64,000 bases of DNA from Oopsacas minuta. Lineage: Eukaryota > Animalia > Porifera. Under the pieces are notes generated by a model that had not been told where the DNA came from, did no database searches, and was given only the letters and a program-made list of their open reading frames with translations. Position numbers and translations under genes: made by a program. The stretch is taken from positions 27,517-91,516 of the forward strand of contig JAKMXF010000019.1 of NCBI GenBank assembly GCA_024704765.1. Reading direction: 5' to 3'. Of the stretch, positions 87 through 8,539 are shown in pieces (the stretch's first letter is position 1; each line of letters opens with the position of its first letter).

Positions 87-3000
87 AATGTCTCTCATAA
101 CAAGCAGAAAGAGACAGGAGAAGGCCTCACGAAGAAGGAACCCATGAAACAAGCAACAGACGTAATACACAGAATAATCTGGGACCCTGAGCTACCCTCC
201 GAATGCTTTATTATCGGATATCTCGATAGATTCGTGGGAATAATAGAAAGACCTTTCTCAGAGTTTAGCTGGGAAGATATAGCTACAGTAGACTTAGACG
301 TGCTTGCTATTCCTAAACATAGAATACAATACTTTAAGTATAAGAATGTAGTAGTCTGGGATAAGAACTTACAGTTGGATAAAGTGTATGGCTCTCGGGG
401 TACTAATATTACTATACAGGAGGTTATACAGGAATATGAAGCTAATAATCCCAAGAGTAAATCCAATGGTGAGAGCTTGTTATTGTTGTGATGATTTGTT
501 TGTTTGTTTGTTGTTTACCAATTAAAACACTTGTTTATTATCTGAGCTATTAAATATTGTTCCCGAATTTCCCATTACTGAAGTTAGGGCTTTGACACCT
601 TTCAATAACCTCACCACTCCAGTTATAACGAAGCTCAATGGGTCGCTATAATTCCTTTGATATAAGCGGGCATTTCGAGATAATAGGAGTTTAATGCATA
701 AAATCTACATATTTCATTACAGAACCCATTGCTACGGAGACAGTAACAGCTGATACAGAGGATATCTCCCCAGCTGAGGCAAAGATAGAGCTAATGATTG
801 AGGATTCAGATGATGAGAGTACTATTGATGACGTCAGTAGTGTTGCTAGTAACTTTAATGCTACAAGACTAGCTAACAGGAAAAGTCAGAATAAGGACAG
901 ACCCAATTATTTTCTGTGTTTTAAAGTAAGAATCCATGGTTCTTTTTCATAGATTTATTGGGACGAATTATTGTACTTTCTGTTGGCTAGTTGCAAATTA
1001 TTTTCAATATCTCTACAAATATTTATCTTTGTTATACACTTAGGTAACAGACACTGGTATACAGAAACAAGCAAGGAATGTCCAGAAGGGAGTACTAGCT
1101 AACTGTCCGATGCTAGAAGAGGCATGTCTTAACGTCAATAGACTACACGTAACGCTAGTTATGATACGAATAGATTCAGAAGATGAGATGTATAGAGCTA
1201 TTGAAGTTATTGGAAATTTTCAAAATGAGTTATGTAGGATTTTACCTCAGTTTAATAAGATAGAAATCAATGGTGTAGATTGCTTTAGAGATCAAGTAAG
1301 TTGTTTATTTGTTTGTTTGTTTCTTACTTGACGGGATCCCTTGATTGTCGCCGGTTTTAACTTCATATCCAGAGGGAAATGAAAACTGGATATTTTACTA
1401 TTTTTGCAATATTTTGAATATTTTCGGGTGTAATAAAGGAATAAATTGAAAATCTCTGCGTGTTAAATGATATATGTAGTTTATTTGTTTGTTTATTTGT
1501 TTGTTTGTTTGTTTGTTTGTTTGTTTGTTTGTTGTTTATTTGTTTGTTTGTTTGTTTGTTGTTTATTTGTTTGTTTATTTGTTTGTTTTTGTTGTTTGTT
1601 TGTTGGTTTGTTTGTTGTTTGTTTGTTGTTTGTTTGTTGTTTGTTTGTTGTTTATTTGTTGTTTATTTGTTTGTTTATTTGTTTGTTTTTGTTGTTTGTT
1701 TGTTGGTTTGTTTGTTGTTTGTTTGTTGTTTGTTTGTTGTTTATTTGTTGTTTATTTGTTGTTTATTTGTTGGGTAGATGAGTTGTAGTTTAATTGGCGT
1801 GTTAAAATATAATAATTCTATAATCTATAATTACAATCTCCATGATTTGATTGGTAAAATTGCTAATCAGCTGATTACTGGTTGCTAGGATGATATCATG
1901 GAATGTTAGAACTATTGGAATTGTTTGAGGAACAATCTTGTCCAGTCACGGGGTCTATCTTGGTACTTGTCCGATCCTGCATATTTATCAAGTTTTCTTT
2001 CGATGTATTTGTTAGAGTTTCAGCAATTTTCAGAGGGTTTATATTCATATTTTCACACCTTTTAACTTCCCTCCTTTTCACTCTATTCGTCCTCACGAAA
2101 AGCAAAACACTTACGTATATTGTCAATACAAATATAATTACATTAATACAAATAATACAAATAAGAATACACAATTGTATCAATTCATTTTCTCCAAATT
2201 CTAGAATACATTTCAAAATTCCCATTTTTGCCTAAAAATTTTCTCTTAAATTATTTTATAGTTTCAGTTCTGAACCCATACTGTACCTATAAGTTCTCTG
2301 TTGGGGATTCTATATGGACTTTATGTTCCGTATTCTATAGCAACACATCTGTGTAATAGATATTCTGTTATCTTGTGTTTCAATACGGGAAATATATGTC
2401 ACAGTTTGAAAAGCAACATTATCGGGTCACTTAGGGGTCTAGATTGCCCCCCTGTCCTCTGATTAATTAAGTTACTTAGCGAAATCACCCCTCGGGGTAT
2501 AGTTTATGCCAATGAGTCAACAATTCGTCAGCTACTCAAGCCAATACTTAAGGCTTCTTCTATTTCTGTATTTCATAACTCTGATTAATACATTAACTAT
2601 TTACACGAAGTTAATATGACTGTTTTGAATCATGGATGGGACTTTTATGGGACTTTTCCCCAGGATAGAGATTCGTATGCCTTACTAATGGAGTTGACGT
2701 CTTAACACGTCACAAGGGGATGTGATAATTCTACACGCTGTAGACTGCGCTTAATAAACCAACACCTTGATTCCGCTTATATGGGTCAAATGGTCTGATC
2801 CTGATGTGGTCCTATTAAGCGTAGTCTTCTGTATTTTCATCCTATAGGTAATATTCGCGTGTTTGAAAGCCAACTCTGCTCTAACGCGTGTTGCCAGTGC
2901 TCTGAAGATCAGATTTGAAGAGGCTGGTATCGGTACCCCTGGTAACCATGTCCCCTTCAAGCCTCACATGACGTTAATCAAATTATCCAGACCCTTGGCT

Positions 3001-6000
3001 AAGAAAATGAACATTACTCGTCTGAACCATTCTATATATTTTGATTTTAAAACTACTCATTTTGGGTTTCAATCGGTTGAGACACTAATCTTAGGAAGTA
3101 TGTTTGAGTTGAATGAAGAAGATGGATTCTATGTACACAAGTTTGTTATATCTAATCACATTTCTAGTTTGAGGGAGGGCTTATCTGAAGTCCTCCTGGC
3201 TCAAATTCTCAAAAATATTTGTGTCTCTAATCGGTGAGTTTTTGCTATACACTCAACTCCTGTTATGTCTAACACGGATATATAAACACATACGGGAGTT
3301 GACTGTATTTATAATTATCTCACTTTGTAGTTCTCTACCAGTCGTACAGATGATTGAAGATGTCATGAAACAAGATTTTGAGGACTCACATATGCTCGAT
3401 CGTCTCCTCTCTCTTATAATGCACTATGAGACCCCTGTACACGAGGGATATGACGTGATAATACTCCGTGGACTCCCTGGCAGCGGAAAATCCACACTAA
3501 TAGAAAACTCAACCGAATGCAAAAACGGGAAATTATCAATTTGCAGTGCAGATAGTTTCTTCACAGATAATCTAACTGGAGAATACAGATTTGATATTAA
3601 CAAGCTGAGTACTGCACATTCTTCTTGTATGAACTTGTATCTAGAGAATCTAATCGGGAACAAATCACTGATTATTATTGATAACACAAACTCTCAATAT
3701 TGGGAATATTCTCTCTATAAATGTTTGGCGAAGTGTTTTGGGTACAGCTGCTCGGTTTTGGAGTTAATCTGTCCAGATGAAGATGTTCTCAAAGTATACC
3801 ATAAACGGAACAAACACAATGTTGGTTATGAAGTGTTGGTTGCTATGAGGAACCGTTGGGAATGTGATAATACAAGTGTTGTTATTAACCCCAAAAAGGT
3901 AAACAACAATTCTCTACTGAGCTTAGTTAGAGGCACAAAAAGTAAACACAAACAGGACACAATTCCTAATCTTACAACCATCTTATTCGCAGCTGTTTTT
4001 CTAACTCAATATTCATATAACACCCTCATACAACAATTCCCAGCTGTTTTTACAGACATCAAAGCTAGTCACATAACTCTACAATATAGACCCACGAGTA
4101 CAGACATAAACGAGTATAAACTAGGAAGTAATGTTGAGTTTACTGTCTTAGGGTGTGTTCAGGACGATAAGGTGCAGACAGTACCAGTTAAACTGCCCTC
4201 TGATATCAAATCAGAGAATTCACACCCTCATGTGACCATAAGTGTGTCCTCTATTGGAGCTGCTAAAGACTCAAACAATCTCCTAAACAAGATAGCTCGT
4301 ACCAAAAATATAAACGATCTTCCTAACAAACCTGACAATTTGGTACTGCGTGGTACAATAGGCTTACAAGTAGAGACAGCTGACGGACATATAAGGCGGG
4401 TATTTAATAGAACTGAATTGAACAGAGAAACATCCAATACTCCTAAACCCAAACCTACCCTCCCCTCTATAGATATATACACAGGACCATCTGACTACAT
4501 TACCCAGTTATACATCTTTGATCTTGATGGGACACTCATTAACACCCCTGGTCCTCTAGAGGGTCCCGGACAGTATGAGGTGTTAACTGGGACTGTCTGG
4601 CCCTATAACAAGTTTGTTATATACCCTGAGAGCTTGATATACCCCATGAGTACTCATTGTACCCCGGGACCAGGCCTCTTCCAATTCTTCTCTCACAAAT
4701 CGAGGGCCCAGAGTCTGACAGTAGTAATGACAGGGAGACTTCAGTCTATTAGCAATTCTGTCAGAGAGATTTTATCTAATTATAGTATCATTCCAGACGT
4801 GTTGCTATGTAAAGAGGACAATTCTCCCCTCCATACTCCGGAGTACAAGGCTTTGGAGCTTAGGAAACTTCTAGAACAATTCCCTCATGTAAAATACATT
4901 AAAATATGGGAGGATTTGGCTGAGAACCTAGCAGCATTTGCAAATATTACCCCAGATTATTTAGATAAGGAATTCGAGTTTATTGATGTGATTAGTTTCC
5001 AACAACAGTCTCATAAAAAAAAAAGTACTTCTGTGACACAAAAGAAATCTAAAGCTTATCAAACTGTTCGTGTTTATGGGAAAATACAGAGAAGTTCGTA
5101 TCATGATGCTGTAGAGAATACCATTAGCCTGATCTCGTCGCTATGGGCGAGTTGTATCAAGTATCAAGGGAAACCAGAGGATCTAGCTCACCCATTTGGA
5201 TCTTACCCTCTGAAACGAATGAGTGACATTGACTTATGTCTTTATGCACCTAGCAAAATGACAGTCATCGAGTGTATCACCCGTATGGAACAGCTGTTGG
5301 TCCAATGTGGTATCAATTGTATTCACACTTCTCAGCACTCAAGGGTACCCAGAATCCGGTTCCTCTGTCGCTATATGGGAACAACAGAGATCAGTTATGA
5401 TATCATTTTTATGAGAATGAATGAAATGAATGAAATTCCTAGTAAATTGAAGGAATTGAGAAAACTGATTCCTCCAGAAGATATCCCTTCTGTTACTGCT
5501 CTTGAAGGATTGGAATTTGTTAATAGAGTTAAACAAACACTAATAAAAGGTAAGCAATAATATTATTTGTTTATTTCAGAGGTTCACAACCTTTTTCACT
5601 ACGTATACCAATGTTAACACCTTCTATGGACACCCTGCTGTCCTCTGTGGACCACCAAGGATTCCATGTATCCCAGATTGGGAACCACGTGCCAGCCAAA
5701 GAACATACGGGGCCAGACATTTATATTTAGGGAAATATTATTTTTCTGGGAAGTAACATATTTGTATTTGCCTGGCAACCAAAAACGCTGGAGAATTCCA
5801 CATTTTGCCACGTTCTGGTTGGAACATAACACTCAGAATGTGTCATAATAGTGGCACAATGGCAGATTATGTCACATTTTAAATACATTATGTGTAGGTA
5901 TCTCTGAAGAAGACTTTGCAGCTGTTATAGAGCTAATAGTATTAATTCTACGTAGCAAACATCAAAAGGGAAATGCATTCCATTGCATCAGAACATTCCA

Positions 6001-6865
6001 TTTACTCAAAATACTGCTTGACCTCATTGAAAATAAGAAAATATCCAGATCATGTCTAGGATCAGCTGATCAGCTAGCTAGAGCTCTCTTGGACCAACTG
6101 GCCCAGCTGACTACTGAGGAATGGTGTCAGTACTTAGGAGAGTTTGTACCAGTACAATATATTCCTATCTTACAGGTAATGGGGTGCTAAGTACAGTGGA
6201 ACACTGTCTGATAGAGACGTTTATTTATTTTGCAATTTTCAACTCATTTATATATTAAAATTTTTTTACAGAAAATATTCACAGAATGCTCCGTCATATC
6301 AAACTCGCCAACATTTCCATCAGTAGCTGTTTACCACAAGATGTTATCCCCTATAGCATTCCCGTTACCCAATCACGTTGCTATGGAAATAGAAATAGAA
6401 TGTCCTAACCTCCCTCTACAGTTCAAGTACGAGACTATTGTGGAATCAAAATTGGGATCAACTATTAGAAAGATGCTAGAGAGCGGAATTAACCTAATCC
6501 CTGGTCCATGTAGTGCAAACAGGATTTGTTTCAATATTCCAAATATCGAGGAGGAGATAGAGAAGTGTCACGCTACCCTCAAACCGTTCCTATTCGAGTT
6601 TGACACATTAAGACACGAGGTGACAATCAGCTTAATAAGCCAATCAAATATTGTTCTTGCAGCTGAACAACAAATAGTGGATTTGGAACCGATATACGCA
6701 GAAATTCTCGCGTTTAGATCGAGTGAAGAGAAATCGTTTCCACTCCCATCGACACTTAGCAGCCACCAGAGACTCTTGGTATACCAATTCTTAGAGAAAC
6801 AGGGCTTAAAGCATGTAACAAACACAGAAGGAAATGTGAAAAAGATTATTATTAAGAAAATTTGA
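87..6865 (+). CDS. Multidomain RNA end-healing ('Swiss-army-knife'/LENG9-related) protein; exons 87-468, 723-925, 1044-1295, 2848-3233, 3331-5549, 5898-6175, 6272-6865; possibly 5'-partial
   Basis: All six introns are GT-AG and the phases chain into one 4,314-nt frame (1,437 aa). Motifs: MKQATDVIHRIIWD..GYLDRF (MJ1316/DUF504); RPNYFL, LHVTL, PHMTL (AKAP7-like 2H); GLPGSGKST and IIIDNTN (N4BP2/PNK-like P-loop); SHITL and PHVTI (second 2H); DLDGT, MTGR, IWED (HAD); FGSY..SDIDL (pol-beta/PAP NTase); LSSHQRLLVY..GLKH (R3H-like). Confidence 0.82.
1480..1775. repeat. Degenerate (GTTT)n/(TTTG)n microsatellite in intron 3 of the RNA-processing gene
   Basis: About 300 nt of gttt/tttg/ttta units, directly visible. 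Confidence 0.95.
1896..2225 (-). CDS. Putative small single-pass membrane protein nested antisense in an intron
   Basis: 109-aa ORF with one long hydrophobic stretch (LCILICIICINVIIFVLTIYVSVLLFV) followed by a basic RVKRRE. A similar RVKREE follows the TM segment of ORF 27507-27749. Confidence 0.42.
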   Translation of the reverse strand: MGILKCILEFGENELIQLCILICIICINVIIFVLTIYVSVLLFVRTNRVKRREVKRCENMNINPLKIAETLTNTSKENLINMQDRTSTKIDPVTGQDCSSNNSNSSNIP

Positions 6866-7123: not shown

Positions 7124-8539
7124 ATGGCAGAGAAGTTAACAGACTCAGAAGGGAGAGAGGACTTGGTCTACATAAAGACAGAGGATGGTAGCTACAGAGG
7201 CTGGAGGGTTGATTTGTTGATAGACAAGTTATCAAGCAAAATGGAAGAGAAAATATTGTTATGTAGCAGTTGTAAAGGAATGTTAAGAGATGCTTGTCTC
7301 TATGAAGGAGATTTGAGGTGTGGTGTGTGCATTCCTGAGGGTGTAGCATGGCAACCAGTAATAATGAACCGTGAAATTGTCTCTGATAAAATGGTAGTTT
7401 ATTTGTTGTTATTTACAAGTGTTTGTTTGTGTTTACAGATGAGTTATTTATTTGTAGATTAGTTGTCCCCTGAAGAAGAGAGGGTGTGAATGGAGTGACA
7501 CAGTGAGTACAGTAATACACCACCTGGAAGAATGTGAGTTCTTTCCTGTACTGTGTCCTCTGGGGTGTGTCTGTCTGGAAGGAGAGAGGAAGGGGAAAGT
7601 TTTGAAGCTGGAGAAGAGACGGATTGCAGAACACCAGAGAGCCTCGTGTCCCTTAAGAGAACTGGAGTGTGAATTCTGTATGAATAAAGTGAAGGCCTGT
7701 GAGATGAATCCTCATTTGGAGGTCTGTGAGCACTTTCCAGTTCCTTGTCCTAATAGATGTGTGATAGAAGGGGGGGAAGGGACCAGACAAGTGAAGAGGA
7801 GAGATGTTGCTGTCCATCTATCTGATGAGTGTCCTCTACAGAAAGTAGAGTGTCCTTATTGGGTCTATGGATGTAGAGAGGAGATAGAGAGGAAAGAGAT
7901 GGATCTTCATGAAAGAGAATTCGTACACATTCACTTCAGATTATCAATGACTGATATGAAACTGAAACTAATTAAATCCTCTCAAGAACAGGTCATAGCA
8001 AATACCAAAATCGAGAATTTAGAGAAACAAATTACTGAGAAGGATTCAGAACTGAAATCAATTAAAGAAGTACTCTATTCTCATACATCTCTATCTACAG
8101 GACAATTGGAATGGAAGATTGAAGGTGTTAAACAGAAGATAGAAAACAAAGAGTATACTTACAGTGATCCATTCTATGTAGGATTATACAAGTGTCAGGG
8201 GATATTCAATGGAATTGGTTGAATACAGATGAAGTAGGTGTTTTCATTTATATTATGAAAGGAGGTTATGATGATAAACTACACTGGCCTATCAGATACA
8301 AATATACGTTTATTCTACTCAATCACATTAACAGTAATAATAATTATGAATTCACTAATCAAATAACTAAGGAAGATTTGGAGAAATATCCTGAATGCTT
8401 CAAGAGACCTACTGAGATGAGAAATAATGGTTTTGGAAATTATTTCTTCATTTCAAACACTGAAATATTAGAAGCTAAATATTGTAAAGAAGACAGCATA
8501 ACTCTTCTAATTAAAATAGAATTGTTACCATTTTTCTGA
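7124..8539 (+). CDS. TRAF-like protein, copy 1 (degenerate RING, TRAF zinc fingers, short coiled coil, MATH); exons 7124-7393 and 7458-8539; 1-nt frameshift near 8190
   Basis: Motifs CSSC..CGVC, CPLKKRGCEW, CEHFPVPCPN, LEWKI..YSDPFYVG.YK, LHWP. The intron is a 64-nt GT-AG. Adding one G to the run in tgtcagggg restores the frame seen in copies 2-4. Confidence 0.88.

Follow-up and report, generated by a model that had tools for sequence, protein, structure and literature searches.

A glass-sponge gene of ten exons, from Oopsacas minuta, encodes a predicted multidomain RNA end-healing protein

Cutting of RNA by metal-independent ribonucleases leaves a 2′,3′-cyclic phosphate end and a 5′-hydroxyl (5′-OH) end. 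T4 and mammalian PNKP pair a 5′-kinase with a DxDxT 3′-phosphatase, Trl1 combines a kinase and a cyclic phosphodiesterase (CPD) of the 2H type, and Cid1 and poly(A) polymerase (PAP) extend RNA 3′-OH ends. Eukaryotic 'Swiss Army Knife' (SAK) RNA-repair proteins were reportedly predicted from comparative genomics by Burroughs and Aravind in Nucleic Acids Research in 2016; in Pfam, which also has a family 2H-SAK (PF22547), HAD_SAK_1 (PF10307) is listed under 'Swiss Army Knife RNA repair proteins'. The authors of that classification describe the MJ1316 domain as a reader of 2′,3′-cyclic ends that across many eukaryotes occurs in diverse fusions with RNA-repair domains (PMC6514570). Here we analyse a gene of the glass sponge Oopsacas minuta that brings such domains together in one chain. 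It occupies positions 87–6865 (+ strand) of a stretch of 64,000 nucleotides, hereafter the window (assembly GCA_024704765.1, contig JAKMXF010000019.1, positions 27,517–91,516 of the forward strand), and begins upstream of it.

The locus is one expressed, spliced gene. Its complete predicted protein, encoded by ten exons of which three lie upstream of the window, has 1,629 residues, with the domain order RWD, MJ1316, AKAP7-like 2H, polynucleotide-kinase-like P-loop, Trl1-CPD-like 2H, HAD_SAK_1, PAP/Cid1-like nucleotidyltransferase, ferredoxin-like module and R3H. We consider it somewhat probable that the product of this single gene is an RNA end-healing enzyme whose healed ends are sealed in trans and are not passed on to decay.

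The window DNA is AT-rich and eukaryotic. Seven exons on the + strand (87..468, 723..925, 1044..1295, 2848..3233, 3331..5549, 5898..6175 and 6272..6865) are joined by canonical GT..AG introns with agreeing phases into a single open frame that ends at the stop codon 6863–6865. An initial annotation, made from the letters of the window, had proposed just such a frame, and both phases and splice sites bear it out. Four public sequencing runs of one sample, X1–X4, cover the stretch. Runs X1–X3 are DNA-like, with even depth across introns and none of the splice joints. Run X4 is RNA-like, with an exon depth 10–40 times the intron depth and parts of introns at zero depth; RNA sequencing was part of the O. 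minuta genome project (PMC10280926). Contigs assembled from X4 skip exactly from 468 to 723, from 3233 to 3331 and from 5549 to 5898, all with GT..AG borders, and their loose ends agree with the junction 925/1044. The joint 3233/3331 has a depth of 835, with 53 letters on its shorter side. The two joints for which the initial annotation had proposed an RNA check, 3233/3331 and 5549/5898, are therefore both crossed, which rules out a reading as two genes; transcripts ending near 3237, which that reading would entail, are not borne out by X4, and we conclude that there is one gene. The junctions 1295/2848 and 6175/6272 are placed by the division of the Pfam profile AKAP7_NLS over two exons (profile positions 33–96, then 112–200), by alignment with 21 full-length homologues and by a related glass-sponge locus (L011).

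Position 87 is an internal splice acceptor. An X4 contig carries 56 loose letters before it, of which the 30 displayed match L004:7998–8027 exactly and uniquely; a GT donor stands directly after L004:8027, the reading frame continues straight into position 87, and the intron between measures 2,059 bases. Two further exons upstream are inferred from canonical sites, fitting phases and an ATG at L004:7136, which places the three upstream exons at L004:7136–7316, 7566–7786 and 7854–8027 (+ strand), outside the window and 2,864 to 1,973 bases before its first position. They contribute 192 residues, and window positions 87–143 contribute 19 more. The protein of about 1,440 residues given by the initial annotation corresponds to the in-window frame (1,437 residues counted from position 87, 1,418 from M144); the full protein is longer, at about 1,629, since the gene starts upstream. 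Two nearer starts were rejected. The ATG at 88 opens a frame of 19 codons that ends in TGA, and M144 is set aside as the gene start by the acceptor at position 87, spliced to an upstream exon, but may serve in a minor isoform. In the related locus L011 the ten exons recur in unchanged order, 45–85% identical, including the residues encoded by 87–143.

The upstream exons add an RWD domain. The spliced N-terminus scores 45 bits against a family-specific RWD profile over residues 11–112, a match that spans the first splice and includes the YPxxxP hallmark as 'DYPMSSP', whereas the second upstream exon by itself reaches only 14.7 bits with the Pfam RWD model. Pfam recognises RWD at the N-terminus of the proteins of Halichondria, Oscarella, Ephydatia, Hydra, Bryopsis and Aphanomyces, and in the extended sponge protein MJ1316 starts at residue 212, compared with about 190–206 in homologues. 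RWD is presumably part of the ancestral architecture. The domain order from MJ1316 to R3H proposed earlier is supported, as are its motifs; the RWD domain, lying outside the window, was beyond the reach of that annotation. An upstream CCCH exon, which had also been suspected, was not found: the finger motif C-x-C-x-C-x3-H is absent in any frame from the 10 kb upstream and the first 200 bases of the window, and the upstream exons lack it too. Many other homologues have a CCCH finger between RWD and MJ1316, while that of Oscarella likewise has none.

Within the window, the first exon (exon 4 of the gene) encodes a linker (87–143) and then the MJ1316 domain (144–365; Pfam 95.3 bits). The exon 723..925 holds an acidic linker of low conservation, after which the AKAP7-like 2H domain opens with its first strand; the 'RP..F.C' start of the domain is conserved in the alignment with 21 homologues. 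This first 2H domain continues over the next two exons, with its first H-x-T motif, HVTL (1146–1157), in the first half (1044..1295) and the second, HMTL (2965–2976), in the second half (2848..3233). The collinear pieces of AKAP7_NLS score 34.1 and 43.6 bits, both motifs are present, and the first is conserved in 22 sequences. The large exon 3331..5549 encodes four modules, beginning with a polynucleotide-kinase-like P-loop domain (3434–3901, +; Walker A 3470–3493, DNTN 3674–3691) that scores 46.6 bits with Pfam AAA_33. In the family alignment its GLPGSGKS, CSAD and DNTN motifs are invariant, and the family profile finds, among solved structures, the RNA-repair kinase Pnkp1 (3e-7), mammalian PNKP (1e-6) and T4 PNK (1.9e-4).

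Next in the large exon is a second, Trl1-CPD-like 2H domain (3959–4426, +), with HITL at 4070–4081 and HVTIS at 4229–4243. It scores 24.6 bits with Pfam tRNA_lig_CPD (cut-off 23), and in the family alignment H38/T40 and H91/T93 vary little or not at all. Its nearest neighbours by sequence embedding are tRNA_lig_CPD clusters (0.96–0.97), followed by 2H-SAK, Acb1, CNPase and LigT. The profile of this domain found no match among solved structures, and a profile-to-profile comparison (hhalign) with the first 2H domain aligned the first H-x-T motif only, with a probability of 2%. The two 2H domains appear to be distant subfamilies, the assignment of the second resting on Pfam, motifs and embedding neighbours.

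The HAD_SAK_1 phosphatase domain (4484–4981, +) follows, with the motifs FDLDGT (4517–4534), MTGR (4721–4738), a conserved Lys and WED (4907–4918). Pfam scores it at 36.9 bits (cut-off 25.6; window 4559–5200) and at 36.3 bits in the genome scan, which supports the kinship to SAK RNA-repair proteins that the initial annotation had named. Across 17 sequences D13, D15, R85, K122 and D144 do not vary and T83 hardly does, and the profile gives weak matches to class-B acid phosphatases and Pnkp1 among solved structures. Profile scans of the O. minuta genome (61.46-Mb assembly, 365 contigs) show that MJ1316 and HAD_SAK_1 each occur in a single gene, namely this one. A HAD-like fragment on another contig (C188:310800–311090, L009, − strand) has 54% identity to residues 507–608 of the large exon and three in-frame stops; it looks like a decayed partial copy.

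The last module of the large exon is the nucleotidyltransferase palm (5045–5549, +), with FGS..DID at 5195–5236, RVPRIRF at 5342–5362 and the third Asp at 5396–5410. The pattern hG[GS] x9-13 DxD and the third acidic residue are present as FGSYPLKRMSDIDL and YDIIF, and F38, G39, S40, D48, D50 and D106 are conserved at 90% or more in the family alignment. The helical central domain of PAP/Cid1 type is encoded by the exon 5898..6175, with a conserved KGN..RTFH block at 5966–6001, and ends in the last exon. The best relatives of the family profile among solved structures are URT1 (E 0.0014) and Cid1. The fold was taken from the Halichondria orthologue, which is 34% identical to the piece from the palm exon and 42% to that from the central-domain exon. 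Its transferase model, with a predicted local distance difference test score (pLDDT) of 92, shows a palm and a helical central domain, and in Foldseek it matches poly(A) polymerases and Cid1 over both parts with query template-modelling (TM) scores of 0.62–0.71; for the entries 1f5a, 4e8f, 4fh3 and 1q78 these are 0.62–0.70 with probability 1.00.

The last exon (6272..6865) carries the end of the central domain, a ferredoxin-like module (about 6374–6643) and R3H (about 6686–6862). When the O. minuta sequence itself was modelled (pLDDT 81), a ferredoxin-like module with a beta-alpha-beta arrangement came before R3H. The former matches ferredoxin-fold and ACT domains weakly; the latter superposes on the R3H domain of Smubp-2 with a TM score by target of 0.70–0.82, a root-mean-square deviation of 1.5–1.6 Å and 34–36% identity. 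Searched with single sequences, the kinase-2H piece and the HAD-transferase piece, the solved structures yielded no useful match; profiles were needed. Every catalytic motif is intact, and the catalytic residues are near-invariant across 17–22 sequences: four H-x-T motifs, GxxGSGKS and DNTN, DxDGT with T, K and an acidic pair, and FGS..DxD with the third Asp.

An exhaustive sequence search, made with the large exon and no profile, returned dozens of matches below 1e-30, and about 25 proteins of roughly 1,000–1,950 residues match most of it collinearly in their interior. The same Pfam architecture occurs in the sponges Halichondria panicea, Oscarella lobularis, Ephydatia muelleri and Geodia barretti, in the cnidarians Hydra vulgaris and Sanderia malayensis, in the green algae Bryopsis and Cymbomonas and in the oomycetes Aphanomyces and Achlya. 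A search for the architecture across animals, proposed in the initial annotation, has thus found it in other sponges and in cnidarians, and also outside animals. In the databases these relatives are labelled uncharacterized or hypothetical, or bear generic, misleading or automatic names. The novelty of the gene had been overrated: orthologues of the same architecture are in public databases, and Pfam families are named after the architecture. In the oomycete proteins the transferase motif is retained and an RNA_ligase domain (PF09414) stands at the C-terminus in place of the animal R3H.

A second set of relatives is shorter. Searching with the CCCH-MJ1316-2H region gave 325 matches, and among the 120 listed are proteins of about 380–680 residues. 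Those of the listed short proteins that are named come from bilaterians, the exceptions being partial models from Nematostella and an oomycete, one each; LENG9 or LENG9-like is a frequent annotation, and RWD is present in many of the invertebrate proteins. The kinship of the N-terminal part to LENG9, suggested earlier, is supported by 31–39% identity and the same domain order. In a tree of this N-terminal module the bilaterian short forms fall together in a single group within the long forms, and the oomycetes and a green alga lie outside. Deep branches are weakly supported, and the tree is compatible with a single lineage that lost the C-terminal part mainly once. On the simplest reading of these sequences, the long form would be ancestral and LENG9 its shortened bilaterian descendant.

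A ligase is absent from the gene itself. Pfam scans of all exons, including PF09511 and PF09414, found no ligase family, in agreement with the initial annotation, and neither PF09414 nor RtcB has a match on this contig. RtcB is present elsewhere, as a single, well-conserved copy on another contig (521 bits). A genome-wide scan for PF09511, the Trl1 ligase family, was blank; the controls were equally blank, which makes it uninformative. The genome does contain a stand-alone ligase, LOD99_1021, of 227 residues (C222:1580510–1581193, L005:1372–2055, + strand), with an EKLDGGN lysine motif and 87 bits to PF09414. Its closest relatives are four unnamed proteins in ENA at 78–85% identity, presumably from related sponges. 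It aligns end to end, at 25% identity (E 6e-14), with the ligase domain fused in the Aphanomyces orthologue P0229, where PF09414 lies at 1478–1637 and FGS..DLD is kept at 1085. By the logic of domain fusion LOD99_1021 is a candidate sealing partner.

From the chemistry of the domain families we deduce a possible course of events, comprising substrates, order of steps, ligase partner and biological trigger. MJ1316 would dock the 2′,3′-cyclic end of a cut RNA, a 2H domain would open it to a monophosphate, and the HAD domain would strip that phosphate to leave a 3′-OH, while the kinase would turn the 5′-OH of the other end into a 5′-phosphate. The nucleotidyltransferase would then extend or restore the healed 3′ end. 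R3H may hold single-stranded RNA or the 5′-phosphate end; the Smubp-2 R3H structure was solved with a bound 5′-mononucleotide, according to its entry title. The predicted product, with 5′-phosphate and 3′-OH ends, would suit ATP-dependent ligases but not RtcB as a substrate. Sealing would take place in trans, and LOD99_1021 is the best candidate for it because oomycete orthologues fuse a homologous ligase at the place of R3H and keep the transferase.

The RWD domain may point to the ribosome. The best relatives of the homologues' RWD profile are RWDD1 (3e-15), RNF25 (1e-13) and GCN2 (1e-11), with IMPACT weaker (4e-5). Binding to GCN1, a factor on stalled or collided ribosomes, is reported for GCN2, IMPACT and RWDD1, and RNF25 is placed on stalled ribosomes in a GCN1-linked pathway (PMC10931611). 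Since the RWD domain is closest to GCN1-linked RWD proteins, ribosome-coupled action is suggested. In a tentative and rather doubtful extension, RWD would tether the enzyme to GCN1 or DRG on such ribosomes, where it would process the ends left when quality-control nucleases or ribotoxins cut mRNA, tRNA or rRNA on the spot; bilaterian LENG9 would then be a surviving 'reader' stump (RWD/CCCH, MJ1316, 2H). The presumably ancestral RWD domain would give a testable link to ribosome-stalling surveillance.

What becomes of the healed ends is the main point on which explanations divide. They may be healed and tailed for disposal, the 5′-phosphate end feeding 5′–3′ exonucleases and the tailed 3′-OH recruiting 3′–5′ decay, with no resealing. 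In yeast no-go decay, 5′-OH fragments need phosphorylation by the Trl1 kinase before Xrn1 acts; here the gene has no ligase domain, its contig has no PF09414 or RtcB match, and the transferase is nearest to URT1, Cid1, TUT7 and GLD-2, terminal uridylyl or poly(A) transferases that label RNAs for degradation. RtcB, the only universal RNA ligase of animals, moreover needs unhealed ends. However, the oomycete orthologues keep the transferase alongside a fused ATP-dependent ligase, which means that the transferase is compatible with sealing and does not stand in for it; a homologous free ligase is present in the same genome, and a cyclic-end reader with two 2H domains and a phosphatase would be elaborate for mere disposal. 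The suggestion made in the initial annotation, that the lack of a ligase may point to tailing or decay, is weakened by the oomycete proteins and by LOD99_1021, and together the ligase-bearing oomycete forms and the free sponge homologue speak for a pathway able to end in sealing. Disposal is quite possible, if less probable than repair. Because transferase and fused ligase coexist in oomycetes, we rank repair with sealing in trans somewhat above decay of healed and tailed ends, by a small margin.

Several observations weigh against the favoured reading or parts of it. The case for a ligase in trans is a single domain-fusion argument at 25% identity, and the other named matches of LOD99_1021 are only in Naegleria and the green alga Symbiochloris, not in the other animals with the long protein. 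Decay remains a live alternative, healed ends being useless to RtcB, the standard animal ligase. The role of MJ1316 as a cyclic-end reader is itself a prediction, carried in the Pfam name, and literature searches found no assays of MJ1316, DUF504 or LENG9. Among the profile assignments of the initial annotation, MJ1316, AKAP7_NLS, AAA_33, tRNA_lig_CPD and HAD_SAK_1 hold, while the transferase (Pfam MTPAP-like_central, 19.7 bits, cut-off 27) and R3H (26.5 bits, threshold 26.8) fall below their thresholds. The R-x3-H motif keeps an invariant Arg, but a Tyr stands in place of the His in the O. minuta protein, in that of the sister glass-sponge locus and in one further homologue (P0012). As to the gene model, the junctions 1295/2848 and 6175/6272 come from collinear profile and homologue alignments and not from RNA, and the only upstream junction observed in RNA is the one into position 87, those between upstream exons 1 and 2 and between 2 and 3 having no RNA joints. 

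The remaining alternatives concern substrate, role and gene number. The AKAP7-like 2H domain might degrade, and the transferase make or modify, 2′–5′-linked or cyclic oligonucleotide signals of immunity, RNA ends not being the substrate. AKAP7-type 2H domains can cleave 2′–5′ oligoadenylate and sponges have 2′–5′ oligoadenylate synthetases (OAS); the nucleotidyltransferase CdnC of the CD-NTase family is among the Foldseek matches of the transferase, at lower rank, and the anti-CBASS family Acb1 is an embedding neighbour of the second 2H domain (0.89). Yet the top structure and profile matches are RNA 3′-end transferases and not OAS or cGAS, the polynucleotide-kinase-type domain, MJ1316 and R3H all indicate polynucleotide ends, and the RNA ligase fused in oomycetes suits repair and not signalling, which leaves a signalling regulator unlikely. 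A kinase followed by a Trl1-CPD-like 2H domain is the pairing seen in Trl1, and like its kinase-CPD half the protein could be a housekeeping enzyme that heals ends in tRNA splicing or in unfolded-protein-response mRNA; we think this very unlikely, as the genome has a single, well-conserved RtcB, the enzyme that fills these roles in animals, and the absence of the whole kinase-to-R3H part from bilaterian LENG9 argues against an essential role. Hardest to credit is that the locus is a read-through artefact or comprises at least two distinct genes. It is true that a single assembled contig provides the junction from the RWD exons into position 87, across an intron of 2,059 bases, and a shorter isoform from M144 is conceivable, but spliced contigs span 3233/3331 and 5549/5898, the frame is open and conserved across 87–143, and dozens of single proteins in other phyla run from RWD to R3H, including RefSeq models of Halichondria, Oscarella and Hydra.

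Other features of the locus may be mentioned here. The gene upstream (L004:3798–6503, + strand) encodes a protein of 901 residues with a long Gln/Pro-rich repeat, and its counterpart in L011 gives repeated matches to the ubiquitin and Rad60-SLD families. Downstream, a gene with a TRAF-type zinc finger and MATH occupies window positions 7124–8539 onward, starting about 260 bases past the stop codon, and at least three TRAF/MATH genes are arrayed at the equivalent place in L011. The order of a ubiquitin-like-repeat gene, the gene analysed here and a TRAF array is kept in L011.

The introns contain repeats. In intron 3, of 1,552 bases, about 320 bases (window 1470–1790) are an imperfect (TGTT/TGTTT)n microsatellite, which yields spurious open reading frames rich in Cys, Leu and Phe in three frames and at which read contigs break. 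Intron 1 (613–691) holds a short dispersed repeat of 60–75 bases with at least 20 copies on other contigs at 78–87% identity. Contigs of the DNA runs leap from 677 to 3291 with four extra letters, for which reason a related copy of the repeat probably lies in intron 4, at about 3291–3313. Coding exons show single-base differences between the assembly with run X1 and runs X2–X4, at 275, 779, 913, 916, 1139, 4960–4981, 5056 and 5357, presumably allelic variants of the sampled individuals.

One chain here packs a predicted cyclic-end reader, two 2H esterases, a 5′-kinase, a phosphatase and a 3′-end transferase, and the family ranges over oomycetes, green algae, sponges and cnidarians. Compact, present once in the genome, expressed and complete in its motifs, the glass-sponge copy offers a clean place to start biochemical work. 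For the human gene LENG9, to which no function is assigned, its possible origin as a shortened descendant gives a concrete hypothesis.

Compared with described systems, the sponge protein shares something with each and coincides with none. With LENG9 it has in common MJ1316 and the AKAP7-like 2H domain in the same order, preceded in invertebrate members by RWD; LENG9, however, ends after the first 2H domain, at about 380–680 residues (most 420–570), and lacks kinase, second 2H, HAD, transferase and R3H, so that the bilaterian protein corresponds to no more than the first third of the long form, whereas the sponge frame runs about 1,040 residues further, and many LENG9 members have the CCCH finger that the sponge protein lacks. 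Fungal and plant Trl1 (ligase, kinase and CPDase) and vertebrate CNPase likewise have a P-loop polynucleotide kinase followed by a Trl1-CPD-type 2H domain; unlike Trl1, the sponge protein has no adenylyltransferase/ligase and has in addition a phosphatase, a transferase, MJ1316, a second 2H domain, RWD and R3H. As in T4 Pnkp, mammalian PNKP and the bacterial Pnkp1 of Pnkp-Rnl-Hen1, a 5′-kinase and a DxDxT HAD-type phosphatase are found in one polypeptide, but here a 2H domain separates them, and the HAD domain is of the SAK family, weakly similar to solved phosphatases. Cid1, URT1, TUT7, GLD-2 and canonical PAP have a palm of the same make, with G-S...D-x-D, a third Asp and a strand like 'RVPxxK/R', and likewise a helical central domain, whereas similarity in sequence is very low (10–18%), a Pfam PAP-associated domain was not detected in the sponge protein, and its transferase is embedded in a repair protein. 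Closest are the SAK RNA-repair proteins, in which HAD_SAK_1, above threshold here, is fused to MJ1316, 2H, kinase and nucleotidyltransferase domains in one spliced frame; the sponge version differs in carrying no ligase, a module that some members have, in ending in R3H and in starting with RWD. The sponge gene is a new member of this catalogued, computationally predicted family, whose orthologues are already in public databases.

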